64,000 nt of DNA from Heteronotia binoei (Eukaryota). Within the stretch, counting starts at the first letter, position 1. Each line of letters opens with the position of its first letter. Both the position numbers and the translations under genes were made by a program. Below are positions 15,696 through 56,136 of this stretch, one piece after another. The notes under the pieces were generated by a model. The model saw nothing but the letters and a program-made list of their open reading frames with translations, ran no database searches and was not told the DNA's origin. The stretch covers positions 19,654,001 through 19,718,000 of the forward strand of contig NC_083237.1 in NCBI RefSeq assembly GCF_032191835.1. Reading direction: 5' to 3'.

Positions 15696-16121
15696 ATGTC
15701 TCCCTCCGGCTACGCCCTTTGCCTCCTGCTCCTGGTGGCGGCCGTCTGGCTGTGGCTGCCCTGCTGCGAAGGCAAGCGCTTCCGACACTTCCTGAGCAAG
15801 CACCAGGACAACCCCAAGTCCTACTATGGCGATGACAACAACTACTGCAACAACATGATGCCCCGCAAGGGCCTTAGATGCCAGAGGAGAAACACCTTCA
15901 TCCATGCCACGGAGCGGCAGCTGAGGTCCATCTGCAATCGTGGAGGGCAGATCCAGAACGGCATCACCACCAGCAGGGACATATTCTCCATCACCACCTG
16001 CAAACGGAAGAGGAGGGGCTGGTTCAGGAGGCAGTGCAGGTACAACGGGAAGAGCAAGACAAGGAAAATCCGGGTCTTTTGCAGGAAAGGCAAGCCGGTC
16101 CGCTTCCTCTCCCACCTGTAG
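15696..16121 (+). CDS. RNase A superfamily protein 1 (141 aa; secreted, cationic, catalytic Lys/His replaced)
   Basis: Signal peptide MSPSG...CCEG; FLSKHQD (His12 motif), YCNNMM, CQRRNTFIH (CKxxNTF-like), six Cys, PVRF in place of PVHF. Single coding exon after acceptor AG at 15664-15665. Confidence 0.93.
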   Translation: MSPSGYALCLLLLVAAVWLWLPCCEGKRFRHFLSKHQDNPKSYYGDDNNYCNNMMPRKGLRCQRRNTFIHATERQLRSICNRGGQIQNGITTSRDIFSITTCKRKRRGWFRRQCRYNGKSKTRKIRVFCRKGKPVRFLSHL

Positions 16122-16431
16122 CCTCATGAGAAAGGCGGCTGCTCCTCCCATCGGGGAAATAAGAGCCCCTCTGGCTTCTCTGGCTCGCCGCTCGATGCCC
16201 TTGCATCTCTCACAGCACCCAGAGCTCATCATAATGCTCTGCAAATTCTTACCCATCCCTTCAAATATAAAGCACCAGCTAAGCAGCTGGTGATGTCTCC
16301 TCGCCTCTTTGGGATGAAGACAAAGCACGGTCATGGCGCTCGGCCACGGCAAAAGCCCCAGTTGCTCCTGCAGCCTCCAGAAGGTGTCTGTCTCGTTCCT
16401 GTTTCCCTGCTGCTGCTCCCCCCCCCTATAC

Positions 16432-16437
16432 AATAAA
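16432..16437 (+). terminator. Polyadenylation signal of gene 1
   Basis: AATAAA followed ~20 nt later by GT-rich tgttgtgttg; same context in genes 2-4. Confidence 0.75.
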
Positions 16438-16567
16438 GGCATTTATCATAATGAATGTTGTGTTGAATTCCTTGCACTGGACCACCCTGTGGTTTTTCCC
16501 AGGAAGATACGGTTTCAGAGATTAGCCGTGTTGGTCTGCAACAGAGCAGCTCGGTTTGAGGCCAGGA

Positions 16568-17234
16568 CGTCACCGTGTTGACAGGACCACGGAGGAGAAA
16601 CTCAGCCACAACAAAGAAAAAACTCTCTGCATAAAATACAATACTAGCTTGTTATGAATAATAAGTATCACAATACAAAAAAGAATATCGCCAGTACACA
16701 TCCTCTGAGTCATTCCAAGTTAAAACCTCATAAGGTCCACAATGCTCCTACGGGCCTTATGTGGCTCAAGGTCACTATATTAAATTCAGTACAGGGTTTG
16801 GAAAAAGGGTCCAACGGAGAACCAGTCTGCTTTGCAAGCCGTTTCGGATCTCAAATCCTTCTTCTAGGGACCAATCTTGTGAATATTGTACAGTTTTCTA
16901 GGTCCAGTAGTGCCAAAAATATTCAGTCATCAACTGTGTCAGTCCTGAGTTCCTAGCTTCCTCTAATTTTCATTCATAATAGCGGAAATGCCATAGTGAA
17001 ATACAATCCTTGTCAGCAATGCAGCAATATTGACATACTGGGGATGTGTGTGGGGGATGCCTGTGTTGTTGACAAGGATTCTATTTCACTATGGCATTCC
17101 CGCTATTAGGCATGAAAATTAGAGGAAGCTAGGAATTCAGGACCCACATGGTTGATGACTGATTATTTTTGGCACTACTGAACCTAAAAAATTGTATAAT
17201 ATTCTCAAGATTGGTCCCTAGAAGAAGGATTTGA
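16568..17234. mobile_element. Junction insert A/B: Penelope-like element remnant ending in a ~384-bp palindrome (16851-17234)
   Basis: Arms of ~165 bp (tcaaatccttcttctagggacc... / ...ggtccctagaagaaggatttga) around a ~50-bp spacer. Minus strand reads ccctagaagaaggatttgagatccgaaacgg, resembling a pLTR hammerhead motif. Confidence 0.6.
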
Positions 17235-20200
17235 CCCATCCAGTCCAACACTCTGTGTCACACAGTGGCCAAAAAACCCAAGTGCCATCAGGAGGTCCAC
17301 CAGTGGGGTCAGGAGAAGAGAAGTCCTCACACAATGGCCCCTCACAAGCACCAAGAATACGGAGCATCACTACCCGAGACAGAGAGTTCCAACGATAAGC
17401 TGTGGCTAATAGCCACTGATGGACCTCTGCTCCATATGTTTATCCAAATAAAACTTTGTTGGACTTAAAGGTGCCACTGGACTCACACTTTGTTCTCATG
17501 GATTTTGTTTGTCTGATGTAGTGGGATCTAGACTGTATGAAGGATGGGATAATTTGGGCAGAGACTGGGGAAAATGGAAGGAATATTCATTTAGCGGAGT
17601 GCTCAACGCAGCGGTGACACGAAGGGTATCGTTATCTTTGCAAAAACTAAAGTGAGCCCTTTATTCTTAGAAACTGAATTCTAGTCAGGGTAGAGACAGG
17701 ATTCTAATCTAACTAGGATGGACAGAGATGCAGAAAGTGTGTCTTGCCCTCCCAGGGTCAAGATGGAGAAGAGCGTGAAGAGAAGGCGTCAGCTGAAAGA
17801 AAGGAAGATTCTCCGAGAGTAAAAGGTGAGACATTGAAGGAATAGCAGCAGAAAGGAAGGATGTTTGGGGTCCTGACCTCTCCATCTTGCTGATTCTCTA
17901 TAGCCCCCTCCCCCGAAGTCCATGGCTCAGAGACAGTGCAAAGTTCTTCACTTCCAACAAAAACACAGTTGTGTGATTCCATGATGTCATTTCCTGGTAT
18001 CCATATTATTCAATGAACCCCCCCTCCTCCAAGTTTTCTCCTCATCACTCCATTGAGGGTGGGTGGGTGCCAAGCAGTGGGGACGGGAGGTGACAACCTG
18101 GTAAGACTAGCTCCAGGTAATGCAAACTTATGCTGGAATGTCAGTCTGTAGGCAGACACAAAATCCCAATTTAATTTCTTCTGCAAGAGAGGCAAATGCT
18201 GCAATGCTAAGGACTTTTTCTTGGAAATTAGGTTGCCAACCTCCTGCTTGGTTCTGGAGAGCTCTCCAAATTACACCTGATCTCCAGACATCAGTTCCCT
18301 TGGAGAAAGTGGCTGCCAGGTCTACTTCAAATGCCCTCCAACGGAGCCCTGAGATTGTCTTTGCTGGGCATTTTTCAAATGTAAGAGCTTCTGAGGCAAG
18401 GGTGCCCAGCTCTGAGTTGGGAAATTCCAGACGATTTAAGGGTGGAGCCAGGGGAGGGTTCAATTTGGAGAGGAGAGGGACCTCAGCAAGGTATAATGCC
18501 ACAGAGTCCAGCTGCATGGGTCAGGATGCAGCTGGAGTTCTGGAAGCCTCACTTCAAGAAGGATGTGGACAGAATGGAGGAAGTGCAGAGGAGAGTGACG
18601 AGGATGATCAGGGGCCTGGAGACCAAGCCCTAGGAGAAAAGGCTGAGGGAGTATGGAATGTCCAGTGTGGAGAAGAGGAGGTTGAGGGGGGACATGATGG
18701 TTCTCTTGAGGTATCTGAAGGGCTTGCTCTTGAGGAGGGCAGGGAGTTATTCCTGTTGGCAGCAGAGGAGATGACTTACAACAATGGGTTCCAACTAAGG
18801 GCAGGTAGGTACCGGCTGGACATTAGGAAAACCTAGGAGAGCCAGTTCGGTGTAGTGGTTAAGTGTGCGGACTCTTATCTGGGAGAACCAGGTTTGATTC
18901 CTCACTCCTCTGCTGGCAGCTGCTAGCATGGCCTTGGCTCAGCCATAGCTCTGGCAGCGGTTGTTCTTGAAAGGGCAGCTGCTGTGAGAGCCCCCTCCAG
19001 CCCCACCCACCTCACAGGGTGTCTGTTGTGGGGGAGGAAGGTAAAGGAGATTGTGAACCTCTCTGAGACTCTTTGGAGTGGAGGGCGGGATATAAATCCA
19101 ATATCATCATCATCTTCTTTTTTACAGTCAGAGTTGTTCTCTGGAATGGACAGTGGAATGGACTAACGAGGGAGGTAGTGAGCCCCCCCCTCCTCACTGG
19201 CAGTCTTTAAACTGCGGCTGGACAAACCCTTGTCAGGGATGCTCTAGGTTGATCCTAAACTGAGCAGGGGGCTACACTAGAGGGCCTGTGTGCCCCTTCT
19301 AACTCTGTGATTCTATGAAATCACTTCTAATTCCGAGAAGTCTCCAGGGCCACCTGGGCATTGGCCACCCTCCTGAGGTTGTCTATGCTTTGTAGTTGTT
19401 GTCATCAAATCGCAGCTCACTTACAGTGACCCCCAGTAGGATTTTCCAGGCGAGAGAGGTCCAGAGGTGGGTTGCTGTGGCCTGTCTTCGTGTCATGACC
19501 CTGGTCTTCCCTGGTCTGTGCTGGAACAAATTCAAGATATTCTTCATAACATGCCGTCCTCTCTAAACTTTAGAGAGAAGTGGGCAAAAGATCTAACCAG
19601 AGAGGAACCAAACCTTTTGTAACACCTAATTTGGGGAACTCTTTGTGTGTTCCAACACAGGTCAGTTGGTGGTTTACATAACCAACAGGAGAAGGTTGTA
19701 AAAGGAGGCTTCCGATATTTTTTCAGGAGGCAGGTCAGGAAACGGGAAGGATTAGCCCAGAGTGGGGGTTGTGACAAGACCTCTTGTGGGAAGATTCCAG
19801 TGGAAGCCAGGGCCTGTTGGGGACATCATGGCCAGATGACTGCCAAATCATAGCCTTCCACATTCAACAGCCTCAGATTCAGGGCCAGTGCATGGGAGTA
19901 GGCAGTTGCCTAGGGCGCCACCTGGCCTGGGGGCACCACTGGATGCCCCCTCTCTGACGCATGACTCTGGCTCCTGACCGCTGTCCCCTTGTCCTCTCCC
20001 ATCACCAAGCTGCCCTCAACAAAGCCAAGCCACCCCCCTCTCCCTGATGTGTGACTTGGCCTCCCACCTCATCCTATCCTGCCACCCTCCTTCCTGGAGT
20101 GGCCAGCAAGCACTTATTCTCACAATTTTTTTTATAACATTACAATGTTTTTGCAAAATTAAAAATCAGTAAATTAAAAATTTGAAAAGTTTCAAGTTTG

Positions 20201-22114
20201 GTGCTCTTCAATTTCCCTATATTTTTTAATAATGGGGAGGGGGCGTTAGTGGGTGACTCGCCTACACTGCCCAAAAGCCAAGCACCGGCCCTGCTCAGAT
20301 TAGCTTAGACTCACTGCTCCTTTGACCTTTTTGCCAAACCAAAGAAAAGAAAACCAAAGAAAAACAAATAATCTGCATTCCTCCCAAAGGAAGATGCCCC
20401 TGAATGTAAAACGATCCTCCTCAACAAAGTTATTCACAAAACTGTACAAAACTGTAACTTGTACATGAATTTCAGTGGGTGCTGGGGTTGCCAAACTCCA
20501 GATGGGGTCTGGAGATCTCCTGGAATGATAGCCGAACTCCGGACTGCAGTGATAAGGTCCCCTGGAGAAAATGATTCTGCTGCTTTTAGGTGGGCTCTGT
20601 AGCACACTGAAGGTTTTCTAGCGGCTGTCAGAGCTGCCAACTCTGGGTGATTCCTGGAGATTTAGGGGGGGGCCCTGGGGGGGAGGGGGGGTTTAGGGAG
20701 AGAAGGAACCGCAGTAGGGTAGAATTCCATGAAGTCCACCCACTGAAGCAGCCATTTTCTTCATGGGAAGTGTCCTTTGGAGAACAGTTGTGATTTTGGA
20801 AGATCTCCACGCCTTACCTAGTTGATAGCAACCCTAGGCTAAGGCAATGTACTAGGACCTAACCAGGGGTTGAATTCAGCAGGAGCTCACAGGAGCACCG
20901 CTCCTGAACCTCCAGCCAGGGTCTGCATGCATTGGGGAGTTCTCTCCCTGCTTCACACAGATCCCGGGGTATATGCAAATGAGATATGCTACTGAGCTCC
21001 TGAACCTTTTTTTCTACAAAATGACTCCTGGACCTAACAAATCATTACCTATAAAATGAGAAAGAGAGGAGTAAATGAATATATGGAGCTCTTTCATGCG
21101 ATGGTGTAGTAGTGTAATGTAGTGGCTAAAAGCAGCAGACTGTAATATGGAGATCCGGCTTTGATTTCCCTCTCTTCTACATGAGGCCTGCTGGGTGACT
21201 TTGGGTCAGTCACAGTTCTCTCAGAACTCTCCCAGGCCGCCCTACAGCTCTCATTTTGGGCAGGAGCTCACAGGAGCAGAGCTCTGGAACCCCTAAATTT
21301 TATTGTGTTCTTTCTTCTTAAGCCACCCCTCTCCCCTCCAAAAAATACATGCTTCTTGGCTCCATTGTTCAAATCCACTGTGAGAATTTTGCTGAACTCT
21401 AAGATATGACAAACTTTTCTAATATTTCCCCCCACCAAAAATGGGAAAAAATAACCAAAACATATAAAGCAGATGGATGGAAATCTTCCTCATGCCACTG
21501 TGGCCACAGAGGGGAAAGCAAATTAAAAAGTAAGATGGGAGTAAGGTTTTATTATGACCATTATAATTTGAGAAGCATTTTAAGGTATACGCTGAGCTAA
21601 TAGGATTTAGTACACCTTCGGGCGACGACTGGGGTGTGTGGCAAATGCAAATGAGTTGTGCTAATGAGCTCTGGCATCTCTTTTTCTATTAAATGACCCC
21701 TTCACAGGGTGTCTGTTGTGGTGAGAGGAAGGAAAGACTATTGTAAGCTGCTATGAGACTCATTTGGGTAGAGAAAAACAGGGTTTAAAAACCTTCTCTT
21801 TTTCTGTTCAACTGAGAGCAAATTTTTTGCCACATCTTGACTGATAACAGACAGGCACTTTGGGCCGACTCAGAGACGTCTTTGAAATTGGCCCCAACCC
21901 CCCCTCCAGACAGCAGCATCTGCCCCCCTTCCCTGACCTGTGCTCACCCTGTCCTCTGGGCCAATCCACCCAGCTCAAAAAGCTTCCACTGCCAAAGTGG
22001 TAGCAAACGTTTGGGCTGGCCACCATTTGCCTCCTGGATGTTTGGAAGGGGAAGGACACACATGAGGTGACTTGGCAGTGTGAAAGCGCCAAGCCGCCCC
22101 TAGCTGTTTCTGGC

Positions 22115-22472
22115 TTTTTTTCCTTTTCCTTTTTCAGTTTTATTTATACAAAATGCCTTGAGTGAAAATCAAACAGTAAGAGGAAAAACTGATGATCAGA
22201 TTCCAAGCAAGTCAGTTCCTTTCCCCATCCAAAGGCAACCAGTAACTTGGCATTGTTTGCTCGTATTTTTTCCAGCCCTTTCTTGTAATGTTTCTTTGCA
22301 AAGCGCATGTTCCTCAGGAACTTGGGACCAACCCCCTTCAGAGATTCGTATCCATGTGATCTGGGCTTCTTAATGTCATTTCTGTGCCGTTTGCGAGACT
22401 GGTTGTGAGTGGGGTGGTTCTTGGACTTGGCCATAGCTGAAACCTCCGTCGCCACTGCCGCTGGGACGGCAA
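22115..22472 (-). pseudogene. RPL29: RPL29 processed pseudogene (unit B copy)
   Basis: [20 protein letters not shown]...ANNAK from ATG at 22434; the 5' TOP end is deleted relative to A. Confidence 0.92.
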
Positions 22473-24554
22473 ACTGACGGCTCACAGACGGGATGGGGAC
22501 ACCTCGCTGGGGACCGTGTGGAGGCTCTGAGGTGACTCTTTTTGAGCAGTCCTGCTTTTGGCCACCTCCCAGCTGCCCCAGAATGCCCGTCTGTTCACAG
22601 CCCTTGATTAATAATTGGGAAGGCCACCCAATTGCTTCAGGGCCCCAATCCAGCAGAGGAATGTGTGTAACGTAAGCATATGCATCTTCCTCAGTTTGAT
22701 CACTCATCTACTTAGCCTGCTACATATGGGAACATATGAAGATGCCTTATGCTGAAGCAGACCCTCGGTCCATCAAAGTCAGTATGGTCTACTCAGACTG
22801 GCAGCAGCTCTCCAGGGTCTCAAGCTGAGGTTTTCATGCCTATTTCAGTCCAGCTTAAATATATTACATCTAACCATCTGGTGATATCCCAGAAAACAGT
22901 GCGATAGTTGTCCTGACAGTAGCCATTTCAGACAGGTCTTCTGTTTAAAACTTCTTTGCTTTTGCTCTGGTCAGTGAACAGAAGCAGATCGTGAAGAAGT
23001 GTGACCAAAGCAAGCAGCTCTCTGAAGATTAAGCTATGGGGCCTCTGCCACAGTGAAGGTTGGTGCAAATTCAGTTTAGGCCCTGATATCTGGATAGGGA
23101 TGCCAACCTCCAGGTGAGGCTTAGAGATCTCCTGGAAGTGTACCGTATCACCAGCCTTCAAAGTGCTCCAGAGATGCACACTGGAAAGACAAGGCTCTGC
23201 CTTCAATACATGCTTGGAGAACATGACTGTGGGATTATTTCCTACTATTTAAAATCTCAATTTATAGTAGGGTTGCCAAGTCCAATTTAAGAAATATTTG
23301 GGGACTTTGGGGGTGGAGCCAGGAGACATTAGGGGTGGAGCCAAGATCAAGGCTGTGACAAGCATAATTGAACTCCAAAGGGAGTTTTCGCCCTCACATT
23401 TAAAGGGATGGCACACCTATTCAATGCCTTCCTTCCATAGGAAATAATGAAGGATAGGGGGACCTTCTTTTGGGGCTCATAGAATTGGACCCCCTGGTCC
23501 AATCTTTTTGAAGCTTGGGAGGTATTTTGGGAAGAGGCAGTAGATGCTATACTGAAAATATGGTGCCTCTACCTTAAAAAACAGCCCCCCAGAGCCCCAG
23601 ATACTCGCAGATCAATTCTCCATTATTCTCTATGGGAATAAATCTCCCTAGGAAATAATAGAGTTCCCAGCAGACATTTCCCTCCCCTCCCCCCGCTTTC
23701 TGATGACCCTGAAGAGCGGGGAGGGTCTCCAAACCGGGGGATCACCTGCCCCCACCTGGGGATTGGCAACCCTAACTTATAGTGCTGATGCTCTGACAGA
23801 ACGTACTCAAGAAAAATTTACTGTGTTCTGGTTCCAAATAGTGGAATATCTCACCAAACATAAAATTCTCCCCCCAAAAACCTGTTTTTATCATGATATG
23901 CTCTATCTCTAATATGTTCTGGGCTCACTTTCTCTCCTCTGGTCTGAATAAAAAAAAAACTGTGAGCTCTAAATTGAGTTTGATTAACTGGATTTCTTAA
24001 TAGAATATTGGGACAGTTCTTTGTACATTCCTACAGTAGAATCAGTCAATAGAATGTATTGTCACGGGGTGCTCTTCAGTATAACTGTATGACTGCTCCT
24101 TGGTTCTCTATTTTATGGATTACTCTTTCTCTTTCTTGTTTTTTGTAAAAATGTGTTTATTATATCCTCAGCAAGGCTGCATTATTTGAGGTGACAGATT
24201 ACAGTGTTCTTTATTGCAAACTGAAAATGTGTTAATAAAAAATTGATTAATTAAAAAAAAAGTGCTCCAGAGAAAATGGCACCTTTGGACGGTGGACTCT
24301 ATGGCTAGATTCCAGGTGGAATCCCTCCCCACATTCCCCTCTTCCCAGGTTCCCCCCTCATATCTTTAGGAATTTCCCAATTCAGAGCAGGCAACCCTCT
24401 CTTTAGGAGCAAGGGCTGAACAATTTTTTTCCTTTGGTGAGATTTCAAACCACCTAGGGCCACATCTCAGCTGGGCAGAAAGTTGCTACATGCTGGGTTA
24501 CTAAATAGGGAACTTAGAGGGTTGGAACCGACAACCACAGGTTCTCTGCCGCCG

Positions 24555-27252: not shown

Positions 27253-27678
27253 ATGTCTCCCTCTGGCTACACCCTTTGCCTCCTGCTCCTGGTGGCAGCC
27301 GTCTGGCTGTGGCTGCCCTGCTGCGAAGGCAAGCGCTTCCGACGCTTCCTGAGAAAGCACCAGGACTACCCCAAGTCCAACTATGGCGACGACAACAACT
27401 ACTGCAACAACGTGATGCCCCTCAAGGGCATGAGGTGCCGGAGGAGAAACACCTTCATCCATGCCACGCAGCAGCAGCTGAGGTTCATCTGCAGTCCCGA
27501 AGGGCAGATCCAGAATGGTATCACCACCAGCAGGGCCATCTTCTCCATCACCACCTGCAAACGGAAGAGGAGGGGCTGGTTCAGGAGGCAGTGCAGGTAC
27601 AAGGGGAAGAGCAAGACAAGGAAAATCCAGGTCTTATGCAGGAAAGGCCGGCCGGTCCGCTTCCTCTCCCACCTGTAG
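27253..27678 (+). CDS. RNase A superfamily protein 2 (141 aa; cationic, catalytic Lys/His replaced)
   Basis: FLRKHQD, CRRRNTFIH, six Cys, PVRF; 20 amino-acid differences from gene 1. Confidence 0.93.
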   Translation: MSPSGYTLCLLLLVAAVWLWLPCCEGKRFRRFLRKHQDYPKSNYGDDNNYCNNVMPLKGMRCRRRNTFIHATQQQLRFICSPEGQIQNGITTSRAIFSITTCKRKRRGWFRRQCRYKGKSKTRKIQVLCRKGRPVRFLSHL

Positions 27679-27968: not shown

Positions 27969-27974
27969 AATAAA
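27969..27974 (+). terminator. Polyadenylation signal of gene 2
   Basis: AATAAA in the context conserved with gene 1. Confidence 0.75.
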
Positions 27975-28771: not shown

Positions 28772-31700
28772 CCCATCCAGTCCAACACTCTGTGTCACAC
28801 AGTGGCCAAAAACCCCAAGTGCCATCAGGAGGTCCACCAGTGGGGTCAGGACAAGAGAAGTCCTCACACAGCGGCCCCCCACAAGCACCAAGAATACAGA
28901 GCATCACTACCCCAGAAAGTTCCAATGATAAGCTGTGGCTAATAGCCACTGATGGACCTCTGCTCTATATATTTATCCAAATAAAACTTTGTTGGACTTA
29001 AAGGTGCCACTGGAATCACACTTCGTTCTCATGGATTTTGTTTGTCTGATGTAGTGGGATCTAGACTGTATGAAGGAAGGGATAATTTGGACAGAGACTG
29101 GGGGAAATGGAAGGAGTACTCGTTTAGCAGAGTGTTCAACGCAGCAGTGACACGAAGGGTCTCTTTATCTTTGCAAAAACTAAAGTGAGCCCTTTATAGT
29201 TAGAAACTTCATTCTAGACAGGGTAGAGACAGGATTCTAATCTAACTAGGATGGACAGAGATGCAGAAAGTGTGTCTTGCCCTCCCAGGGTCAAGATGGA
29301 GAAAAGTGTGAAGAGAAGGTGTCAGCTGGAAGAAAGGAAGATTCTCTGAGAATAAAAGGTGAGACGTTGAAGGAATAGCAGCAGAGCAGCAGAAAGGAAG
29401 GATGTTTGGGGTCCTGACCTCTCCATCTTGCTGATTCTCTATAGCTCCCTCCCCGAAGTCCATGGCTCAGAGACAGTGCAAAGTTCTTCACTTCCAACAA
29501 AAACACAGTTGTGTGATTCCATGATGTCATTTCCTGGTATCCATATTATTCAATGACCCCCCCCCCCCACTCCCAGTCTTCCCCTCATCACTCCATTGAG
29601 GGTGGGTGGGTGCCAAGCAGTGGGGATGAGAGGTGGCAACCTGGTAAGACTAGCTCCAGGTAATGCAAACTTATGCTGGAATGTAGGTCTGTAGGCAGAC
29701 ACAAAATCCCCATTTAATTTCTTCTGCAAGAGAGGCAAATGCTGCAATGCTAAGGACTTTTTCTGGGAAATTAGGTTGCCAACCTCCTGCTTGGTTCTGG
29801 AGAGCTCTCCAAATTACACCAGATCTCCAGACATCAGTTCCCCTGGAGAAAGTGGCTGCCAGGTCTACTTCAAATGCCCTCCAACGGAGCCCTGAGATTG
29901 CCTTTGCTGGGCATTTTTCAAATCTAAGAGCTTCTGAGGCAAGGGTGCCCAGCTCTGAGTTGGGAGATTCCAGACGATTTAAGGGTGGAGCCCGGGGAGG
30001 GTTCAATTTGGAGAGGAGAGGGACCTCGGCAAGGAATAATGCCACAGAGTCCGCCCTGCTAAGCAGCCATTTCCTCCAGAGGAATCGATCTTTGACATCT
30101 GGAGATCTGTAGTTTGATCTTTGTGATTTTGGTAACTTAAATGAGGATCACACATACTGGACGGGGGATTCACTTCTGGGTAGCGGTGTGTGTGAACGAG
30201 ATCCAAGGTAAGGGTGGACCATAAGTTAAATATGTCAGTGTGATGCAGCAATAAGAAAGGCTAACACTATCTTGGGTGTTTCCAGTGCTTTTTTTGAGCA
30301 GGAACGCACAGGAATGCAGCTCTTGCTGGCTTGACGTCAAGAGGCATGGCCTAATATGCAAATGAGTTTGTGCCAGGCCTTTTCTACAAAAAGCCGTGTG
30401 TGAAACCAGGGTGATGTCAGGGGGTGTGGCTTAATATACAAATGAGTTCCTGCTGGACTTTTTCTACCCAAAAAAAGGCTTGGGTATATGAACAGAGCCA
30501 TAACATCCAAATCGCAAGAGGTCCTTGTCCCAATATACACTGCAGGGGTCAGGATGCACCTGGAGTTCTGGAGGCCTCACTTCAAGAAGGATGTGGACAG
30601 CATGGAGAAAGTGCAGAGGAGAGTAACCAGGATGATCAGGGGCCTGGAGACCAAGCCCTAGGAGAAAAGGCTGAGGGAGTTGGGAATGTTCAGTCTGGAG
30701 AAGAGGAGGTTGAGGGGGGACATGATGGTTCTCTTGAGGTATTTGTAGGGCTTGCTCTTGGAGGAGGGCAGGGAGTTATTCCTGTTGGCAGCAGAGAAGA
30801 AGACTTACAACAATGGGTTCCAACTAAAGGCAGGTAGGTACCAACTGGACATTAGGAAAACCCTTTTTACAGAGTTGTTCTCTGGAATGGTCAGTGGAAT
30901 GGACTAATGAGGGAGGTGGTGAGCCCCCCCCCACTGGCAGTCTTTAAATAGCAGCTGGACAAACCCTTGTCAGGGATGCTCTAGGCTGATCCTAAACTGA
31001 GCAGGGGGCTACACTAGAGGGCCTGTGTGGCCCCTTCTAACTCTGTGAGTCTATGAAATTACTTGTAATTTCGAGAAGTCTCCAGGGCCACCTGGGCGTT
31101 GGCCACCCTCCTGAGTTTGTCTATGCTTTGTAATTGTTGTCATCAAATCACAGTTCACTTACAGTGCCCCCCAGTAGGATTTACTAGGCAAGAGAGGTCT
31201 AGAGGTGGGTTGCTGTGGCCTGCCTTCGTGTCATGACCCTGGTCCATGCTGGAACAAATTCAAGATATTCTTGATGACACACCATTGAAGCCTAAACTTA
31301 GAGAGAAGTGGGCAAAAGATCTAACCAGAGAGGAACCAAACCTTTTGTAACACCTAATTTGGGGAACTCTTTTTGTGTTCCAACTCAGGTTAGTTGGTGG
31401 TTTACATAACCAACAGGAGAAGGTTGTAAAAGGAGGTTTCTGATATTTGTTCAGCAGGCAGGTCAGGAAACGGGAAGGATTAGCCCAGAGTGGGGGTTGT
31501 GACAGGACCTCTGCAGGAAGCTTCCAGTGGAAGCCAGGGCCTGTTGGGGACATCACGGCCAGATGACTCCCAAGTCATAGCCTTCCACATTTAACAGTCT
31601 CAGATTCAGGGCCGGTGCATGGGGGTAGGCAAAATAGGCTGTCGCCTAGGGTTGTGCCAATGAGCTCTGCACCTCTTTTTCCTATGAAATGACCCCTTCA

Positions 31701-31982: not shown

Positions 31983-34900
31983 GAGGGTTGGATAATGGAG
32001 TATTGAACTGCTTCTCACAAGGGGAGCGGACTGGGGCCTCTGTTCTGGGTAGAAAAGGCGATTTCAACGCCTGCTGCCTACTTTTCTCAGAAAGAGATCA
32101 GTCCAAGACATGATTGAAAAATTCTGAGGAGATTTACTTTGGCTGAAGAGGAGTTCCAGAGGGGCTCCTTTGAGGCTTTAAAGAATATGCGGCGATGAAT
32201 TGCATTCCAACATCTACAGAGGACTCCCAGTGTCATTAAATTGACTTAAATTCACCAGCATCCAAAGCTTCTTTGTTCTACTTAACATCTAAATCAACAT
32301 CAGAATGGTGTCTACGTGGGTAACTAATGCTGAAGGTACAGATTCTTAGCTATCATTCTGGGACTAAAATAAGAACTTTATGAAAAAAGTTAAAAGGTGG
32401 AAAGTTAATTATATTATGTCTACATAAAGAAGAAGAGGAGGGGGTGAAACTAATTTTGGTGGCCTCAAGAAGAAGAAAGGAAATTTTTTTTAAAAAGGTG
32501 CAGAAAAATTGCAGGCGCCATTTTGGATTAAATAAAGACTTTAAAAATTAATATCTTGACTTGGGAAGCTTCAGGAACGGCGATTTTGGGCTCATTGCAA
32601 AGGGCAAGTTTTTGTCTTCAAAACCTGATATTCAAAATTTAAATTGGTGAGATCAACTTTTTGAGTTTATTTTCATGTCAGACCATAAGCCAATACGTAC
32701 AAGAGCTGGCTCATTGGAAAAGATGCAGGAGCAATTGGATGCTATGGAAGCAAGAATGATGAAAGGGATGAAAGAGCTAATAACTGCTTGTAAGAAAGAA
32801 ATAAAGAAGGACATTGAATCTTGCACAGAAGCCTTGAAAAAAGAAATTGAGGATCTCAGAAATGATACTCAAGTAACATCAAATAAAGTACAGGAGGTGG
32901 AGGAGAAGGTGAAAGAGCATGATTCCACCTTAAAAAATGCAAGAGAAGGTAGTAATGCATAACTGCAAGTTGATGGAAAACCAGATATGCTTGAGAGGAG
33001 TACCTGAAAATGAACAAAGTGATTTGAAGGAATATATAATAAAAATCATTGCTGAATTTTTAGGTGAGGACCCAGAGGAGTCTTAGCATCTGTATGACTA
33101 TGTGTACAGGGTCAACTCACTTTTTGCTAAGAAGAACAAATTACCAAGAGATGTGGTAATAAGATTTGTGACAAGAGATATGGTGGGAAAGATCATGAGT
33201 AAACACTGAAAAAACATTAATGGTTGATGATAGCAGAATAAGAATCATGAAAGAGTTGCCAAGAAAAGTTACAAATGACAGAAGACTATACAAAAAATTA
33301 ACAGACAAGCTACGGGAGAATGAAACAAGGTATAGATGGATATTACCAGAAGGTTTGAGTTTTGAACACCAAGGAAGAAGGGTTACAATTACAAGCACAC
33401 AAGAACTGCAGAGATGTTTTGAAGAGCACAAAGAATTTGGGGATACAGAATAAATTAAAGAATCATGATGGATTACAAATTAATATCTTGGAATGTAAAT
33501 GGACTAAATTCACCACAAAAAAGGAAGGCAACATTTCATTGGATTAAAAAACAAAATTGTAATATAATTTGTTTACAAGAAGTTCATATCAAACAGAAGG
33601 ATTATAAACTTTTATGGAATAAACAATTGGGATTGGATATTTTTCGTTGGCTAAAGAGAAAAAAAGAGGTGTGCTTTTTTATATTAAGCAAGAACTAAAT
33701 CCAAAATTGATCTTTAAAGATGATGATAGGAGATACATAGCTGTGGAAATAATGGTGAATGATAAAAAAACGTTGCTATTGGGACTATATGCACCAAATG
33801 GAGCAAAAGACTCTTTCTTTAAAGATATTATGCAACAGCTTGACCAAGTGACAAATTATAATAGGAGATTATACTTGGAAGGAAGCAGTCATTTCTTTGA
33901 TTCCAAAAGAAGATAGAGATGTCACAAATGTAAAAAATTATAGACCAATTTCATTGCTAAATAATGACTATAAAATATATACACAGATACTAGCAGAGCG
34001 ACTTAAACAATATTTGATGAATCTTATTAAGGAGGAGCAAGCAGGATTTCTTCCCAGGAGACAAATTAGAGACAATACTAGAACTGTTGTAAATATTGTA
34101 GAGTAATACTAACAACATCCAGAAAAAGAAGTTGCATTATTCTTTGCAGATGCAGACAAAGCTTTTGATAATGTGAACTGGGGCTTTATGTTTGTGGTGA
34201 TGGAGAAATTGAAATTCGGAGAAAACTTTATAAGAATGGTGAAGGCGATATATACGGAACAACATGCAAGACTTTGTATAATGCAGACTTGACAGAGAAT
34301 ATGATAATTAGCAAAGGAACAATTCTCTCTCCATTGTTATTTATAATGACTTCAGAAATTTTGCTGATGCAAATCCAAGAAGATAAAGAAATAGAGGGAT
34401 TGAAATTGAGAGGTTTTTCCTACAAATACAGAGCATTTGCAGATGATGTAATGTTTATAAATGAAAATCCCATAAAGGTAACACCATTGTTACTGCACAA
34501 GATACAAGAATATGGAGAATTGGCGGGATTCTGTATAAATAAAGATAAGTCGAAAATCTTATGTAAAAATATGTTAATAGATAAGCAAAAAGAATTACAA
34601 CATCTAACAGAATGTGAAGTTACTTCTAAAGTAAAATATCTAGGAGTGGAAATTACAATGAAAAATATTGACTTCTATAAAAATAACTATGTAAAATTGA
34701 TGAAGATATGTTAAAATGGAATAAGCTCAATTTATCATTGTTAAGTAGAATAGCCGCAATCAAAATGAATGTTTTGCCAAGAATTATGTATTTGTTTCAA
34801 ACAATTCTGATAGTGAAGGATAATAAACAATTTAATAAATGGCAAAGGAAAATTTCAGAATTTGTATGGGCTGGGAAGAAACCAAGAATCAAAATGAAAA

Positions 34901-36394
34901 TTCTAACAGATGCAAAAGAAAGAGGAGGATTTCAATTACCAGATCTAAAGCTATACCACGAAGCAGTATGTTTGGTGTGGATAAAAGAATGGATAACATT
35001 GTTAAACAGGAAACTCTTAATATTGGAAGGGCAAGGAAATATATTTGGTTGGCACGCATATATGTATTATAGAAAAAATAAGATGGATGTTTTTTTCTCT
35101 CACCACTATATAAGAAGAAATTTATTAAATACATGGACAAAATACAAAAAATATGGAGATGAGAGGAAGCTGTTATGGATTGTGCCAACAGAAGTAATAA
35201 AAGTATCTTCAGAGATGGATGAAAGAAAGTGGTTACCGTAGTCAATTGTTAAAAATACAAGGCGGTAAGATAGAATTAAAAACGGCTGAAGAATTAAATA
35301 ATAAGTATGATTGGTTTTAAATGCAACAAATTAAGAGCTTGGTGGAAAATTACATTAAAAATGAAGGAATAAGAAAAGATCAAACTGAGTTGGAAAGAGT
35401 TCTGCTTGGTGATAATGACAAGTTGATTTCAAGAATGTATAAATTACTATTGAAATGGTCTACAGAAGATGAAGTAGTAAAGTCTCAAATGATCAAGTGG
35501 GCAATTAATATAAATAAAGAAATACAAATAGAATCTTGGGAATACTTATGGAAGAACTCTATGAAGATATTGACGTGTTATAATATTAAAGAAAATTGTT
35601 TTAAAATGCTGTATAGGTAGTATATGACACCTAAGAAACTGGCAAAAATAAATAATAAGATGTCAGATAGATGTTGGAAATGTAAAAAGCATGAAGGTTC
35701 TTTCTACCATATGTGGTGGACTTGTGAAAAAGTTAAACAGTTTTGGCAAATGATTCAACAAGAGATTTCAAAAATCTTGGGTTATGATTTTAAGAAAGTT
35801 CCAGAAACTTTTTTTTATTGGGATTACAAATGGAAAATTTTTCAAAACAAGATAGAACAATAATTTGGTACTTACTTTCAGCTGCTAGGACATTGTATGC
35901 GCAGTTGTGGAAACAAGATAAAATACAAGAAAAATGAGACTGGATTTTAAAAGTTATATCTTGGAGTGAAATGGACAAACTTACAAGAATCCTAAAAGAC
36001 TATGAGTTGGAGAAATTTAAAATTGAGTAGGAAAACATTAGAAGATATGTGGAAAAAGAATGGAAAATAAAGGGACACTGGGTGATTTTTGATAATTGAG
36101 TTTTTAAAAGAAGGATGAAGATGGACTATAATGATTAAGTTGGGTCTATAGAGGGTTTGTTTATTCTTTTGTAGGATATGTGGTTTTTTCTTTTTTAAAA
36201 TAAGATTCTTGAATTGTTAAGGTTACCTTTTTTTATTAGCAATTTAAGTAATTGACACAGGTGGGGGTCAGGATATGGGGGGAGGGAAGGAGGAAAAGAG
36301 TAAGATATTGGTTAGGCATTAAGGCTGTATTAATACTTTTTTTAGTATTGGATATTATTACCATATGTTACTGAAATAAAATTGTTTTAAAATT
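31983..36394 (+). mobile_element. L1-clade LINE with 5' end present, decayed and internally deleted
   Basis: Perfect 17-bp TSD AAAAAGCTACCACTGCC at 31966-31982 and 36395-36411; single copy in A and B. ORF1 remnants 32675-33453 (coiled coil, RYRWILPEGL). ORF2 EN motif ISWNVNGLN...CLQEVH, RT motifs NYRPISLLNND and FADD, C-terminal RCWKC...HMWWTC. AATAAA at 36375; many stops and frameshifts. Confidence 0.93.
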
Positions 36395-36531
36395 AAAAAG
36401 CTACCACTGCCAAAGTGGTAGCAAACATTTGGGCTGACCACCAGTCGCCTCCTGAATGTTTGGAAGGGGAAGGGCGCACACGAGGCGACTTGGCAGTGTG
36501 AAAGTGCCAAGCTGCCCCAAGCCGTTTCTGG

Positions 36532-36678
36532 CTTTTTTTTCTTTTTCTTTTTCAGTTTTATTTATACAAAATGCCTTGAGTGAAAATCAAACAGTGAGAG
36601 GAAAAACTGCTGATCAGATTGCAAGCAATCAGATTCCAACATCCATCTCCACTGCTACTGGGACTACAACCGGAAGAG
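36532..36678 (-). pseudogene. RPL29: RPL29 retrocopy remnant (unit C): UTRs kept, coding region deleted
   Basis: Poly(A) tract and 3' UTR joined (catcc|atctccactg) to the 5' UTR ending ccggaagag. Confidence 0.75.
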
Positions 36679-41788: not shown

Positions 41789-42196
41789 ATGTCTCCCTCC
41801 GGCTACACCCTTTGTCTCCTGCTCCTGGTGGCGGCCGTCTGGCTGTGGCTGCCCTGCTGCGAAGGCAAGGACTACCCAGGCTTCCTGAGGAGGCACCAGG
41901 ACTACCCCAAGTCGAACTACGGCAACGACAAGAAGTACTGCAACAAAATGATGCCCCGCAAGGGTTTGATGTGCCGGAGGAGAAATGCCTTCATCCATGC
42001 CACGGAGCAGCAGCTGAGGTCCATCTGCAATCCCGGAGGGCAGATCCAGAACGGCATCACCACCAGCAGGGCCATCTTCTCCATCACCACCTGCAAGCGG
42101 AAGAAGCGGTGCAGGTACAAGGGGGAGAGCAAGACCAGGAGGATCCAGGTCATTTGCAAGAATGGCCTGCCGGTCCGCTACATCTCCCACCTGTAG
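41789..42196 (+). CDS. RNase A superfamily protein 3 (135 aa; 6-aa loop deletion, catalytic Lys/His replaced)
   Basis: FLRRHQD, CRRRNAFIH, six Cys, PVRY. Confidence 0.93.
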   Translation: MSPSGYTLCLLLLVAAVWLWLPCCEGKDYPGFLRRHQDYPKSNYGNDKKYCNKMMPRKGLMCRRRNAFIHATEQQLRSICNPGGQIQNGITTSRAIFSITTCKRKKRCRYKGESKTRRIQVICKNGLPVRYISHL

Positions 42197-51498: not shown

Positions 51499-51684
51499 TC
51501 AATGCCCTCATTCATGTCCTATTTCTAAAGAGGTTGCGCTTGTGGTGGACAACTGACAGGACAGCGAAGGTAGAGAAAGAAGTACTTTTATCCCTTTCCC
51601 ACCATATAAGAACTCATGAGCACCCCAAAAAGTTGCTGAGCAGTAGACTTAGAACAGAGCAAAGGAAGTGCTTCTTCATCCAAA

Positions 51685-51836
51685 GGCTGTAATCACACAC
51701 ACTTAATAGTGCACTTCCAATCCACTTTCAGTGCACTTTCCAACTGGATGTTGCCAGTTCACACAGTCAAATCCAGTTAGAAAGTGCACTGAAAGGTGGA
51801 CTGAAAGTTCACTATTTAGTATGGATGATTGCAGCC
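51685..51836. mobile_element. Palindromic Harbinger-like MITE
   Basis: Ends ggctgtaatc / gattgcagcc; internal dyad symmetry; 3-bp TSD AAA. Confidence 0.65.
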
Positions 51837-54007
51837 AAAGAGTCATTAACAGGTAGAATTCATTGCCAGAGGAAATGGTGGTGGCTACAAGCATAGAGAA
51901 CTTCAAGAGGGATTAGATAAACATATGGATCAGAGGTCCATCAGAAGAACAGATGGAACTGTGTCTGGGGGCAGTGACGCTCCAGATGCTCGGAGGGATT
52001 GCAAGTGATCTCCAGACTACAGAGATCAACTCCCCTGGAGAGAACGGCTGCTTTGAAGGGTGCACTCTATGGTACTCTACCCCAGAAGGGCCCCGTCTCT
52101 TCCCAACTCCCCTCCCCAGGCCCCACCCCCAATTCACCAGGAATTTCCCAGCCTGAAGTTGGCAACCCTGTGTCTCCACCTGCATTCACCATGGCCTGGG
52201 ATTTCAGTAGCTGAGCAGTATTATTTATCTATTTGGGACACTGCCGGCCAGTGTAGACCAATTGTAGAGGGTGGTGGATCAGTCATCTGGGTCTCTATGA
52301 AGCAGCTTCATATATTTACTTCTGGGGGTGCCAGTGGGGGGGGGGATGCAGGAGGGTTCCCCCCTGAGATTCTAGCATGATGTTGGGTTGCCAGCTCCTG
52401 ACCGGGAAATTCCTGGAGATTTGGGGATGCAGCCTGGGGAGGGCAGGGACCTCATTGGGATACAATGTCACAGAGTCCACCCTCCAAGGCAGCCATTTTC
52501 TCCAGGGAAACTGATCTCTGTTGTCTGGAGATCAGTTATAATTCTGGGAGATCTCCAGGTTCTACCTGGAAGATGGCAACCGTAAACAAGAGAGGTTGGT
52601 TGGTATGAAAGGAATCAAATAGCCCCTCTTATTTCTGACAGAACCCTTATGTCCAGGGTCAAAGATTAAGATCTTTGTCAAGTTTAACAGCCCTCCATGG
52701 TATTTCAGTAATTTTTAGGAGTGGGGGATAGGGTTGCCACATCTGTGTTGGAAAATACCTGGAGATGTTGGGGATGGAGATGGAAGAGGGCAGGGTTTGG
52801 GGGAGAGCAGGGGTCACAGTCTAGAGCAATGCCCTAGAATCCACCCTCCAAAGCCACCATTTTCTCCAGGGGAGCTGATCTCTGCCAGCTGGAGATCAGT
52901 TGTAAAAGTGGAGATCTCCAGATCCCACTGGGAGGTTGTTGGTACTGTGACCCTCATAATATCAGCCCCCTAAACTGTAGCTTACAGCTCCATGGCTTAG
53001 AGTGATAAAGCTGCAGTACTGCAGTTTGAGCTCTCTGCTCACGTTCAATTCCAGCGGAAGCTGGGTTCAGATAGATGGCTCCAGGTTGCCGCAGCCTTCC
53101 ATCCTTCCGAGGTTGGTAAAATGAGTACCCAGCTTGCTGGAAGGCAAGGGCAAACCACCCCGTAAAAAAGTCTGCCGTGAAAACAGCATGATGCGATGTT
53201 ACTCCAAAGTCGGAAATGACTGGTGCTTGCACAGGGGATTACCTGTACCTTTTAAAACTGTAGCTTACTTAGTTTGTGCAAAAATCTTAGGGTTGCCAAC
53301 TCCAGTCTGAGAAGTTCCTGGAAATTTGGAGGCAGTGCCTGGGGAAGGCAGTATTTGGGGATGGAGCTCAGAATGATGGATAGGGTGCTGCTGATCCCAC
53401 TATGCAAAGCTGCTATTCCCCTCCCCCCCTGGAGAACAGGTCTCTATAGTTTGGAGTCCAGTTGTAATTCCAGGAGGCCTCCAGCTCCTGCCTGGAATTT
53501 GGCAAAACTTCCTTGCAGTAATTCCGGCAGCATAGGCTGAGGGTCTTTCCTTCTCTGTCCGTTTGGTGTAGTGGTTAAGTGAGCTGGACTGCTGTCTGGG
53601 AGAACCAGGTTTGATTCCCCAGTTCTCCACTTGCAGCTGCTGGAATGGCCTTGGGTCAGCCGTAGCTCTTGCAGAGCTGTCCCTGAAAGGGCAGCTTCTG
53701 GGAGAGCTCTCTAAGCCCCACCTCACTCACAGGGTGTCTGTCGTGGGGGCGTAAAGTGAAGGAGATTGTAAACCACTGTGAGATTCAGAGCGAAGGGCAG
53801 AATATCAATCCGATATCCAGGGGTCGTTTAATAGAAAAAGAGGTGCTGGAGCTCATTGCCACAACTCATTTGCATATGCCACACAGCCCTGACATCACCG
53901 GAAGGTGCACTAAATTATATCAGCTCAGCGTCAAACTTAAAATGTTTCTGTATAATTGCCACAATAAAACCTTGCTCACGTCATACTTTTTCATTTACTT
54001 TCTCCTT

Positions 54008-54475
54008 CAGGGCCGACGCGTGGAAGTAGCCCAAGCAGGCAGCTGCTTAGGGTGCCACTTGGCCTCGGGGTGCCACAAAGTGCCCCCTCTCCCCACGCCT
54101 GCTGCTGTCCTGACTTAGCCGAGGCTTCCCGACGCTTGGGAGGCCTCGGCAAAGTTGGGGCGGGGGGCAGCAGCAAGTGCACTCAGAGCCGGCTCCGTGT
54201 GTTCTAGACTTTGCTGAGGCCTCCCAAGGCTCAGGAGGCCTCGGCAAAGTCATGGGACATTGCAGCGAGCATCCTCAGAGCTGGCTCTGAGCGTGCCTGC
54301 TGCCTTCTGGACTTTGCTGAGGCCTCCCTTGGCAAAGTCAGGGGGTGGGTGACAGTTACGTCATCATGATGTCATTGGGTTGTGCATGCAAAGCGTGTGC
54401 ATATATATTGATTGGGGGGGGGGCAGAGAAGTGGAGTTCGGCCTAGGGTTGCAGGCACCCCTAGCACTGGGCCTG
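54008..54475. mobile_element. hAT MITE (CAGGGCC TIR) with internal tandem subrepeats, D-specific
   Basis: Ends cagggccgacgc / gcactgggcctg; degenerate TSD of ttctccta, which is single in A-C. Confidence 0.7.
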
Positions 54476-54746
54476 TTCTTCTAGGTGGCCACAGTGGCAT
54501 GAGGAAGATTTCCATCTGTCTGCTTTAGATGTTTTGCTTATTTCCCCATTTTTTTGTGGGGAAAAATATGAGAAAGTTTGTCAAATCTTAGGGCTCAGCA
54601 AAATTCTCACAGGGGGTTTGAAAAAGGGAGCCCAGAAGCAAGTATGTTTTTTTATTGGGAGGGGGGAAGAAAGAAGGAGCACAATGAAATGTAGTGGTTC
54701 TGGAGCTCCGCTCCTGGGAGCTCCTGCCCAAAATGAGGCCTGCCAA

Positions 54747-54945
54747 CAGTGCTTTTTTTGTAGAAAAAGTTCAGCAGGAAGTCATTTGCATTGCACATCT
54801 GTAGCATCACCATTGTTTTGCACAGGCCTTTTAAAAAGGAAAAGCCCAGCAAGAACTCATTTGCGTATCAGGCCACACCTCCTGACACCAAGCCAGTCAG
54901 AACTGCATTCCTATGCGTTCCTGCTTAAAAAAAAAAAAAGCCCTG
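54747..54945. mobile_element. Octamer-family hAT MITE, independent reverse-orientation insertion in D
   Basis: TSD CCTGCCAA; one intact ATTTGCAT at 54784. Confidence 0.8.
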
Positions 54946-54952
54946 CCTGCCA

Positions 54953-55644
54953 TAGGCTTGCCAATCCCCAGGTCCTAGTGGGGGTTCTTCCGCTTTCCCA
55001 GGCTCCTTCCCGCCCCCAGTCAGCTGGCAGGAAGGGGAAGCCCCGCCCCCAGAGGACCATGTGCCTTTCCCCCTCCGGTGGCTTCAGTCTCCAATTGAAA
55101 GGCTTCCTCTTGGGATGGTGTGTCTGTGTTACTTTGGAGAAGTTGGCAGCAACTTGTGAGTAGAGAGGCTAATCCCTCGCTTCAGAGTTGCCAGAAATGG
55201 GGGTGGGGGGAGGAAACGGAAACGTCTGCTGAGCATTTCATTATTCCTTTTGTGGAGATCGATTCTCATAGGGAATTGATCTGGAGTTTCGGGGGCTCTG
55301 GGGGAGCTGTTTTTTGAGGTAGAGGAACTAAATTTTCAGTATAGTATCTAGTGCCTATCCCCATAGTACCCCCAAGGTTCAAAAAAATTGGACCAGGGGG
55401 TCCAATTCTATGAGCCCCCAAAGAAGGTGCCCCTATCCTTCATTATTTCCTATGGAAGGAAGACATCTAAAAAGGTGTGCTGTCTCTTTAAATGTGATGG
55501 CCAGAACTCCCTTGGAGTTCAATTCTGCGTGTCATACCCTTGTTCCTGGCTCCATCCCCAACGTCTCCTGGCTCCACCCCCAATGTCTCCTGGCTCCACC
55601 CCCAAAGTCCCCAGATATTTCTTGATTTGGACTTGGCAACCCTA
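54953..55644. mobile_element. hAT element (TAGGGTTGCCA-type TIR) ending 36 bp before exon 2 of gene 4
   Basis: Perfect TSD GCCTGCCA at 54945-54952 and 55645-55652. Confidence 0.85.
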
Positions 55645-55710
55645 GCCTGCCAATATCATCTTCTTCTCTCGCCTTTGCAGGCCAGGAGCTCAGCTCCGAA
55701 GGTCCCGGGG

Positions 55711-56136
55711 ATGTCGCCCTCTGGCTACACCCTTTGCCTCCTGCTCCTGGTGGCGGCCGTCTGGCTGTGGCTGCCCTGCTGCGAAGGCAAGGACTACCGA
55801 GGCTTCCTGAAGAGGCACCAAGACAACCCCAAGTCGAACTACGGCGGCAACAACAACTACTGCTACAACATGATGCGCCGCAAGGGTCTGAAGTGCGCGG
55901 GGAGCAACACCTTCATCCACGCCAGCGAGGAGCAGCTGAAGTCCATCTGCAACTCCAGGGGGCAGATCCTGAAGGGGATCACCACCAGCAAGACCCTCTT
56001 TGCTATCACCGTCTGCCAGCGGCGGAGGAGGGGCTTGCGCTGGAGGCTGTGCAGGTACAAGGGAAAGAGCAAGATCAGGAGGATCCGGGTCATTTGCAAG
56101 AAAGGCCTGCCGGTCCGCTACATCTCCTACCTGTAG
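55711..56136 (+). CDS. RNase A superfamily protein 4 (141 aa; cationic, catalytic Lys/His replaced)
   Basis: FLKRHQD, MMRRKGL, CAGSNTFIH, six Cys, PVRY. Confidence 0.93.
   Translation: MSPSGYTLCLLLLVAAVWLWLPCCEGKDYRGFLKRHQDNPKSNYGGNNNYCYNMMRRKGLKCAGSNTFIHASEEQLKSICNSRGQILKGITTSKTLFAITVCQRRRRGLRWRLCRYKGKSKIRRIRVICKKGLPVRYISYL

Follow-up and report, generated by a model that had tools for sequence, protein, structure and literature searches.

Four genes in the genome of the gecko Heteronotia binoei raise the question of what a member of an enzyme family may do once its charge has risen and a catalytic histidine has gone. The genes lie in a window of 64,000 nucleotides (record CM063339.1 of GCA_032191835.1; positions below count from the first letter of this window unless another sequence is named), which contains five genes of the ribonuclease (RNase) A family, all on the + strand and each with a single coding exon. 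Four of them, referred to here as g1 to g4, form a tandem array and encode strongly basic proteins, while the fifth, g5, is an older paralogue that is not cationic. An initial annotation of the window, which did not include g5, took the positive charge of g1 to g4 as a sign of host-defense or nucleic acid-binding proteins that act independently of catalysis. The present analysis leans, with modest confidence and by way of sequence comparison and analogy, toward the first of these, namely that g1 to g4 may be host-defense effectors whose action is driven by charge.

Family and Fold

Judged by sequence and modeled structure, g1 to g4 belong to the RNase A superfamily by descent and fold, but they are not canonical enzymes. 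All four match PF00074 (RnaseA) at 60–69 bits (E 2.9e-16 to 7.8e-19), well beyond the cutoff of 23.1, and the top sequence match in the PDB is the egg-white RNase of the green turtle (2zpo; E 1.5e-20, 36% identity), with angiogenins next. The same proteins head the list when an AlphaFold2 model of g2, built from 21 homologues with a mean predicted local distance difference test score (pLDDT) of 85.1, is searched with Foldseek: 2zpo and the angiogenins are found with a probability of 1.00, and 2zpo has a template modeling score of 0.84 on the target. Six cysteines are arranged in the three-disulfide pattern of the angiogenins and are invariant throughout the alignment. The mature chains are preceded by a predicted leader of 26 residues, which is hydrophobic, has small residues at −3 and −1, and is strongly conserved among the paralogues, and the proteins are thus probably secreted.

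A profile search and a cluster look-up yielded ~35 other squamate orthologues, from geckos, lacertids, skinks, iguanians, anguids, an amphisbaenian, and snakes. These are genome predictions named “ribonuclease-like” only, which is also the NCBI name for the array genes, and no transcript-derived entries were found among the orthologue clusters or the protein clusters of g1 to g4, all of which hold genome-derived sequences only. A literature search on the function of the squamate or gecko “ribonuclease-like” clade found nothing, and the characterized reptile RNases in the literature found are those of turtle and iguana only. Another feature of the clade is an N-Q-T glycosylation sequon (…DGNQTSK…, mature residues ~66–70) that is conserved in most of the non-gekkonid squamate orthologues, while neither the Gekko copies (GNT(L/V/R)S) nor g1 to g4 (NGITTS or KGITTS; positions 15969-15983 in g1) have it. 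Inspection by eye of the four mature chains turned up no N-X-S/T sequon.

Charge of the Mature Chains

The mature chains of g1 and g2, each of 115 residues, contain 31 Lys and Arg against 5 and 4 Asp and Glu, respectively, which corresponds to net charges of +26 and +27 and computed isoelectric points (pI) of 11.47 and 11.57. The g4 chain has the same length, with 29 basic and 4 acidic residues (net +25, pI 10.78), and the g3 chain of 109 residues has 26 and 5 (net +21, pI 10.51). The recomputed charges are identical to the hand counts of the initial annotation, which had also proposed calculating the pI, now placed at 10.5–11.6 across the four proteins. These charges assume that the signal peptide is cut after …LPCCEG, a site inferred from the −3/−1 rule for small residues and from aligning the chains with mature turtle RNase; were cleavage to fall a few residues earlier, no net charge would drop by more than 1.

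A review gives a pI range of 9–11 for the RNase A family (PMC8745102), and g1 to g4 show the unusually high charge and pI that characterize antimicrobial cationic RNases. Mature net charge in the ~35 squamate orthologues spans +6 to +21, with the other geckos at +18 to +21, and the two local controls, g5 (+2) and the canonical RNase encoded to the left of the window (+7, pI 9.4), are far less basic. The net charges of g1, g2, and g4 are therefore the highest in the set examined, that is, among the ~35 squamate orthologues and the two local paralogues.

The additional charge is concentrated in two parts of the chain. The first is the N-terminus, where the replacement described in the initial annotation was seen again: g3 and g4 begin with KDYPG/KDYRG, whereas g1 and g2 begin with KRFRH/KRFRR. 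The change of Asp to Arg at mature residue 2 takes two base changes (GAC to CGC). The first 13 mature residues carry a charge of +3 in g1 and +5 in g2, compared with −1 to +2 in the orthologues from outside Heteronotia, and the stretch is amphipathic, with a hydrophobic moment of up to 0.86 in g2. The second part is a loop that also contains Trp and Phe, KRKRRGWFRRQCRY(N/K)GKSKTRKI, with a net charge of +13 per 25 residues; in g3 this loop is shortened by an in-frame deletion of 18 nt. The basic segment has a pLDDT of 75–82 in the AlphaFold2 model, lower than that of the rest of the protein, as is expected of an exposed loop.

The direction of this change was assessed by a simulation that runs forward from six extant gecko relatives and applies the observed number of random replacements, excluding stops and preserving Cys. 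The charge gain looks directional, because random replacement from these relatives predicts a net charge of only ~+14 ± 4, compared with the observed +25 to +27 (P ≤ 0.01 in 18/18 comparisons); for g3, P is 0.01–0.03. The gain of +4 to +9 thus appears to run opposite to mutational expectation. In the mature chain, nonsynonymous differences amount to 1.1–2.2 times the divergence of the 3′ flank (significant in three of the six pairs) and to ~1.3–2 times the intergenic divergence.

An Altered Active Site

The catalytic residues of RNase A are His12, Lys41, and His119. Of these, His12 is kept in g1 to g4, while position 41 is Gln in g1, Arg in g2 and g3, and Ala in g4, and position 119 is Arg in all four array genes. 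The third gene also has Ala at the position of Thr45 (T45A). The CKxxNTF signature accordingly reads CQRRNTF in g1, CRRRNTF in g2, CRRRNAF in g3, and CAGSNTF in g4, so that none of the four combines the catalytic triad with an intact signature, as a canonical family member would. The same substitutions cripple human angiogenin, in which H114R leaves 1.6% and K40R 6.3% of the activity on tRNA (PMC5296752), and for this reason g1 to g4 appear to have lost efficient catalysis. Most likely, they have very little RNase activity or none, a well-grounded reading of the residues present.

Some of these features are older than the array. Gln11, Lys41, and His119 are found in the turtle enzyme and in the neighboring canonical gecko RNase, and RNase A likewise has Gln at position 11. 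In the ~35 squamate orthologues, Gln at position 41 is invariant and position 11 is occupied by Arg or, rarely, Lys, with His12 and His119 present in most. This suggests an old rearrangement in the squamate clade (Q11R together with K41Q), amounting to a charge swap within the active site. It further suggests that Heteronotia later lost the general-acid histidine and that the constraint at position 41 was relaxed.

Replacement of His119 by Arg is also seen in one Gekko copy per species, namely the ‘B’ copies of G. japonicus (L002:14776-15204) and G. kuhli (L006:23142-23570). As the Gekko copies cluster by species on the tree (support 88–91), this pattern is suggestive of repeated parallel change or of gene conversion. 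An Anolis paralogue has Gln or Lys at position 119.

A Candidate Role in Host Defense

The premise of the initial annotation, that cationic RNases can kill independently of catalysis, agrees with published work (PMC6313885; PMC3295680), according to which the antibacterial action of eosinophil cationic protein (ECP), RNase 7, and avian RNase A-2 needs no RNase activity (PMC6313885; PMC3295680; PMC7597696). Its extension to g1 to g4 as effectors independent of catalysis fits much of what was found: the signal peptide is constrained, the fold and disulfides are intact, His119 has become Arg, position 41 is variable, and charge has increased against mutational expectation in the N-terminal amphipathic stretch and the Trp/Phe loop. 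It fits less well with the origin of the charge, part of which is shared across geckos (+18 to +21 elsewhere).

Under such a scenario, a single gecko “ribonuclease-like” gene that was already cationic would have undergone stepwise tandem duplication in the Heteronotia lineage to give g1 to g4, in all of which Arg stands in place of the general-acid His119 and the remaining active site is loosening. Selection would have kept the disulfide scaffold and the secretion signal and at the same time driven surface charge up to +21 to +27, placed in the N-terminal amphipathic segment and in the loop of Arg, Lys, Trp, and Phe. The proteins could then bind polyanions electrostatically, with lipopolysaccharide, teichoic acids, anionic membranes, heparan sulfate, and nucleic acids as candidate targets, and the outcome may be damage to microbial membranes or agglutination, after the example of ECP, RNase 7, and chicken RNase A-2.

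Several observations weigh against charge-driven effectors. Approximately two thirds of the charge of g1, g2, and g4 is gecko-wide inheritance, and the step specific to Heteronotia, a gain of +4 to +9, is modest. The starting points of the simulation are extant relatives rather than ancestors, which places too many changes on the Heteronotia branch. Gene-wide positive selection is unsupported, with an average omega below 1 and a maximum-likelihood (ML) value of 0.47 that is similar to the 0.38 of other geckos. The excess of nonsynonymous divergence (dN) over the flank may also stem in part from a locally raised mutation rate in an exon rich in GC and CpG, because synonymous divergence (dS) is greater still than dN. 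Lastly, Arg119 together with Lys or Arg at position 11 could still bind phosphate, which would allow RNA binding or weak cleavage.

A broader proposal can be made only tentatively, and is more doubtful than the host-defense role itself: the squamate clade may represent an old branch of the RNase A family in which the active site was rearranged, and within which gekkonids repeatedly abandoned catalysis and arrived at a pure polycation effector on an RNase-fold scaffold. If this is true, the fold would do no more than provide a stable scaffold on which an Arg/Trp loop acts as an antimicrobial or cell-penetrating element, and g1 and g2 (+26 and +27 in 115 residues) would rank with the most cationic folded proteins known from the RNase family.

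Alternative Explanations

Polyanion binding could also serve a non-immune role, whether in the egg or oviduct, in the reproductive tract (compare RNases 9 and 10), in angiogenin-like signaling and heparan sulfate binding, or in the scavenging of extracellular RNA and DNA. Such a role is unlikely, but it would be in keeping with an egg-white RNase as the nearest solved structure, followed by angiogenins, with BBXB-type heparin-binding patterns in the basic loops, and with a loss of catalytic residues comparable to that of RNases 9–13 (PMC6313885; PMC3295680). A mature chain that changes fast behind a conserved signal peptide, in genes that have multiplied within one lineage and gained charge, is, however, more typical of host-defense families, and the tree puts the genes in a squamate-specific clade, so that orthology to mammalian RNases 9–13 is unlikely.

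It is improbable that g1 to g4 are still-working ribonucleases with an altered active site, in which Arg119 partly substitutes for His119 and the charge chiefly improves RNA binding. The retention of His12 in all four proteins and of the NTF motif in g1, g2, and g4 would be expected of such enzymes, and the invariance of Arg or Lys at position 11 and of Gln at position 41 over the ~35 squamate orthologues, most of them with both histidines, suggests that some active-site function is conserved in the clade. Against this stand the 1.6% of activity that H114R leaves in angiogenin and the change of Gln41 to Arg, Arg, and Ala, which occurs only in Heteronotia and, together with T45A in g3, forms a pattern that relaxed constraint after loss of catalysis would produce.

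The condition of the genes bears on a third alternative, in which g1 to g4 are redundant young duplicates drifting to pseudogenes and their charge is a by-product of sequence rich in AGG and AAG. The Arg codons are indeed mostly AGG, the basic loop holds both AGG repeats and the 18-nt indel, and the pairwise omega of the mature chain by the Nei–Gojobori method (NG86) is 0.63–0.87, which is not significantly below 1; the ML estimate for the mature chain is the 0.47 already given. However, the open reading frame (ORF) and the six Cys are intact in g1 to g4. Approximately 4% of possible point changes create a stop, and under neutrality ~5 stops and ~6 frameshifts would be expected in the four genes, where none are observed. 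The coding sequence contains a single indel (18 nt, in frame), compared with 11 gap blocks, 7 of them frame-breaking, in the adjacent 450-nt 3′ flank. An identical splice acceptor (a polypyrimidine tract, then cag/GCCAGG) lies 30 nt ahead of the ATG in all four genes, their 5′ untranslated regions (UTRs) are nearly identical, and each has an AATAAA ~300 nt after the stop. The GC content at third codon positions remains at ~0.9 (0.87–0.92) in a region of ~47% GC, and the signal peptide is constrained among the paralogues (dN 0–0.018, ML omega 0.08). Drift to pseudogenes is rejected by the intact ORFs, the indel pattern, the splice signals, and the signal-peptide constraint, and the shift in charge also runs opposite to what mutation would produce; decay of the array is thus quite improbable.

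That the proteins are oral-gland or ‘toxicoferan’ secretion toxins is very improbable: oral glands of certain lizards and snakes have been reported to contain RNase A-family transcripts (bioRxiv 10.1101/006031), but the same study doubts a conserved toxin role, and its salivary and venom gland data, leopard gecko included, did not show them. The paper offers no expression data on the squamate “ribonuclease-like” clade, and a sequence link of those transcripts to it is not established.

Comparison With Known Systems

The standard cases in which an enzyme fold was co-opted for host defense are ECP, RNase 7, and chicken RNase A-2, and because all three retain the catalytic site, the role of catalysis is still argued. 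The gecko proteins probably exceed ECP in net charge, and do so in a shorter chain. They resemble ECP as Arg-rich RNase A paralogues of recent tandem duplication in which charge rose after duplication, but ECP has a full catalytic triad, eight cysteines, and a mammalian lineage, whereas the gecko proteins have six cysteines and no His119. The antibacterial action of ECP is independent of its RNase activity (PMC6313885). Chicken leukocyte RNase A-2, which is compared here by description only, is like g1 to g4 a sauropsid protein of the angiogenin-like, six-cysteine type, rich in Arg and a duplicate of a less cationic neighbor. It keeps its catalytic residues and a measurable RNase activity. It is bactericidal without a need for catalysis (PMC3295680; PMC7597696), and it is a single extra copy, unlike the four-gene array of the gecko.

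The best match in both sequence and structure is green turtle egg-white RNase (2zpo), which shares the three-disulfide fold. Unlike g1 to g4, the turtle enzyme has Gln11, Lys41, and His119 and is an active RNase, and its aligned loop is much less basic. Mammalian RNases 9–13 are similar to g1 to g4 as family members without elements needed for catalysis, but the close relatives of the gecko proteins are all squamate “ribonuclease-like” genes and their closest solved structures are of the angiogenin type, which makes orthology unlikely; furthermore, RNases 9–13 are not known to be hyper-cationic. The human angiogenin variants H114R, K40R, and K40Q (5m9t, 5m9c, and 1b1e) are among the closest structural matches and are substituted at the equivalent catalytic positions, although they represent single disease or engineered changes in an otherwise intact enzyme rather than evolved proteins. 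The squamate orthologues (Eublepharis, Sphaerodactylus, Gekko, Zootoca, and snakes, among others) belong to one clade with g1 to g4 at 45–70% identity and share Arg or Lys at position 11, Gln41 (as kept in g1), the six cysteines, and the genomic neighborhood, but differ in having a charge of +6 to +21, mostly His119, and one or two copies.

Cationic RNase A paralogues in non-catalytic roles are an already known kind, and what sets Heteronotia apart is a rise in charge to the highest values seen in the clade together with loss of the catalytic histidine from all four copies. The array constitutes a natural experiment, as its four copies are young, the histidine is gone, charge is still rising, and a canonical RNase of modest charge adjoins it as a control. 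Should the proteins prove microbicidal, the fold alone would be a sufficient scaffold for a polycationic effector, and reptiles, whose antimicrobial proteins are little studied, would gain a new family of innate immunity. The squamate-wide Arg11/Gln41 pattern also poses a testable question for RNase enzymology.

Origin of the Array and Its Neighborhood

By gene content and phylogeny, the array arose in the Heteronotia lineage. Eublepharis and Sphaerodactylus hold a single cationic copy between the canonical RNase and the g5-like gene and Gekko species hold two, so the four-copy array is specific to the Heteronotia lineage. The tandem units measure ~11.5–14 kb and are 82–98% identical from unit to unit by self-BLAST, with an intergenic divergence between units of 5–9.5%. 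The codon ML tree, (((g1,g2)100,g3)100,g4)100, has the Gekko copies as sister and g5-like genes as outgroup, and the branching order of g1 to g4 matches their physical order.

In Eublepharis, the layout consists of a canonical RNase on the minus strand, one cationic gene, a g5-like gene, and a 7tm_3 receptor gene. A canonical RNase beside the cationic genes is the arrangement in Eublepharis, Sphaerodactylus, and Gekko kuhli as well as in Heteronotia, and orthologues of g5 adjoin the cationic gene in Eublepharis and Gekko. In g5 itself, position 41 is Trp and position 119 is Tyr; since the Gekko and Eublepharis orthologues keep His119, g5 has lost the catalytic histidine independently. The receptor gene that comes immediately after the RNase cluster on its downstream side in Eublepharis (L004:17739-20429) is of the 7tm_3/NCD3G kind (V2R- or CaSR-type, that is, resembling vomeronasal type 2 or calcium-sensing receptors), whereas in Heteronotia gene calling over the 10 kb downstream of g5 (L001) returned no gene.

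Coordinates and Other Features of the Window

Table 1. Features of the RNase A-family array of Heteronotia binoei, in window positions unless another sequence is named.
Feature	Position	Strand	Remarks
Tandem segmental duplication that produced g1–g4	4525-56583	.	Self-BLAST
g1 5′ UTR portion of coding exon	15666-15695	+	Right behind splice acceptor; conserved junction
Same splice-acceptor/5′ UTR junction in g2, g3, g4	27223, 41759, 55681	+	
g1 ORF, ATG to stop	15696-16121	+	Pfam PF00074 match
g1 signal peptide	15696-15773	+	26 aa, MSPSGYALCLLLLVAAVWLWLPCCEG
g1 mature chain	15774-16121	+	115 aa plus stop, six Cys
g1 H10, His12 equivalent	15801-15803	+	
g1 Q37, Lys41 position	15882-15884	+	
g1 most basic segment	16002-16076	+	KRKRRGWFRRQCRYNGKSKTRKIRV, net +13 per 25 aa
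Basic-segment equivalent in g2	27559-27633	+	
Basic-segment equivalent in g3	42095-42169	+	6-aa deletion, net +10
Basic-segment equivalent in g4	56020-56094	+	
g1 R110, His119 position	16101-16103	+	
g1 AATAAA poly(A) signal	16432-16437	+	~310 nt past stop
AATAAA in g2, g3, g4	27969, 42503, 56442	+	Conserved
g2 precursor ORF	27253-27678	+	Signal peptide 27253-27330, mature chain 27331-27675
g2 R37, Lys41 position	27439-27441	+	
g2 R110, His119 position	27658-27660	+	
g3 precursor ORF	41789-42196	+	Signal peptide 41789-41866, mature chain 41867-42193 (109 aa)
g3 R37, Lys41 position		+	
g3 A41, Thr45 position	41987-41989	+	
g3 R104, His119 position	42176-42178	+	
g4 precursor ORF	55711-56136	+	Earliest-branching copy; signal peptide 55711-55788, mature chain 55789-56133
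g4 A37, Lys41 position	55897-55899	+	
g4 R110, His119 position	56116-56118	+	
g5	61458-61871	+	137 aa, Pfam PF00074 match, older non-cationic paralogue; net +2, pI 8.25; local outgroup
Canonical RNase A gene	L007:2486-2956	-	156 aa; ~0.55-1.0 kb left of window position 1; FLNQH, CKEVNTF, PVHYD; net +7, pI 9.4

The NCBI models of two array genes, P0002 (g1, 222 aa) and P0003 (g3, 168 aa), include extra upstream coding exons 5–11 kb away that lie in repeat-like sequence (6528-6599, 9924-10139, and 30554-30625, all on the + strand). P0002 omits the signal peptide of g1, and P0003 splices into the conserved acceptor of g3. The upstream exons look like annotation artefacts, or like genuine 5′ non-coding exons that were taken as coding.

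Mobile and duplicated sequences are also present in the window. An ORF on the − strand (22144-22707), inside the duplicated unit, has an N-terminus that by eye resembles ribosomal protein L29, with a duplicate near 9.9–10.3 kb; it is probably a processed retrocopy that was copied along with the array. The third duplication unit is broken by an AT-rich block at ~32000-36600 (GC 0.30–0.35), which contains reverse-transcriptase-like ORFs at 34274-35241 and resembles an insertion of a long interspersed nuclear element. Beyond g5, an ORF of 287 aa on the − strand (63045-63908) carries a motif like that of an integrase core (…LVTDNGTAFTSREF…) and resembles an integrase fragment of a long terminal repeat retroelement.

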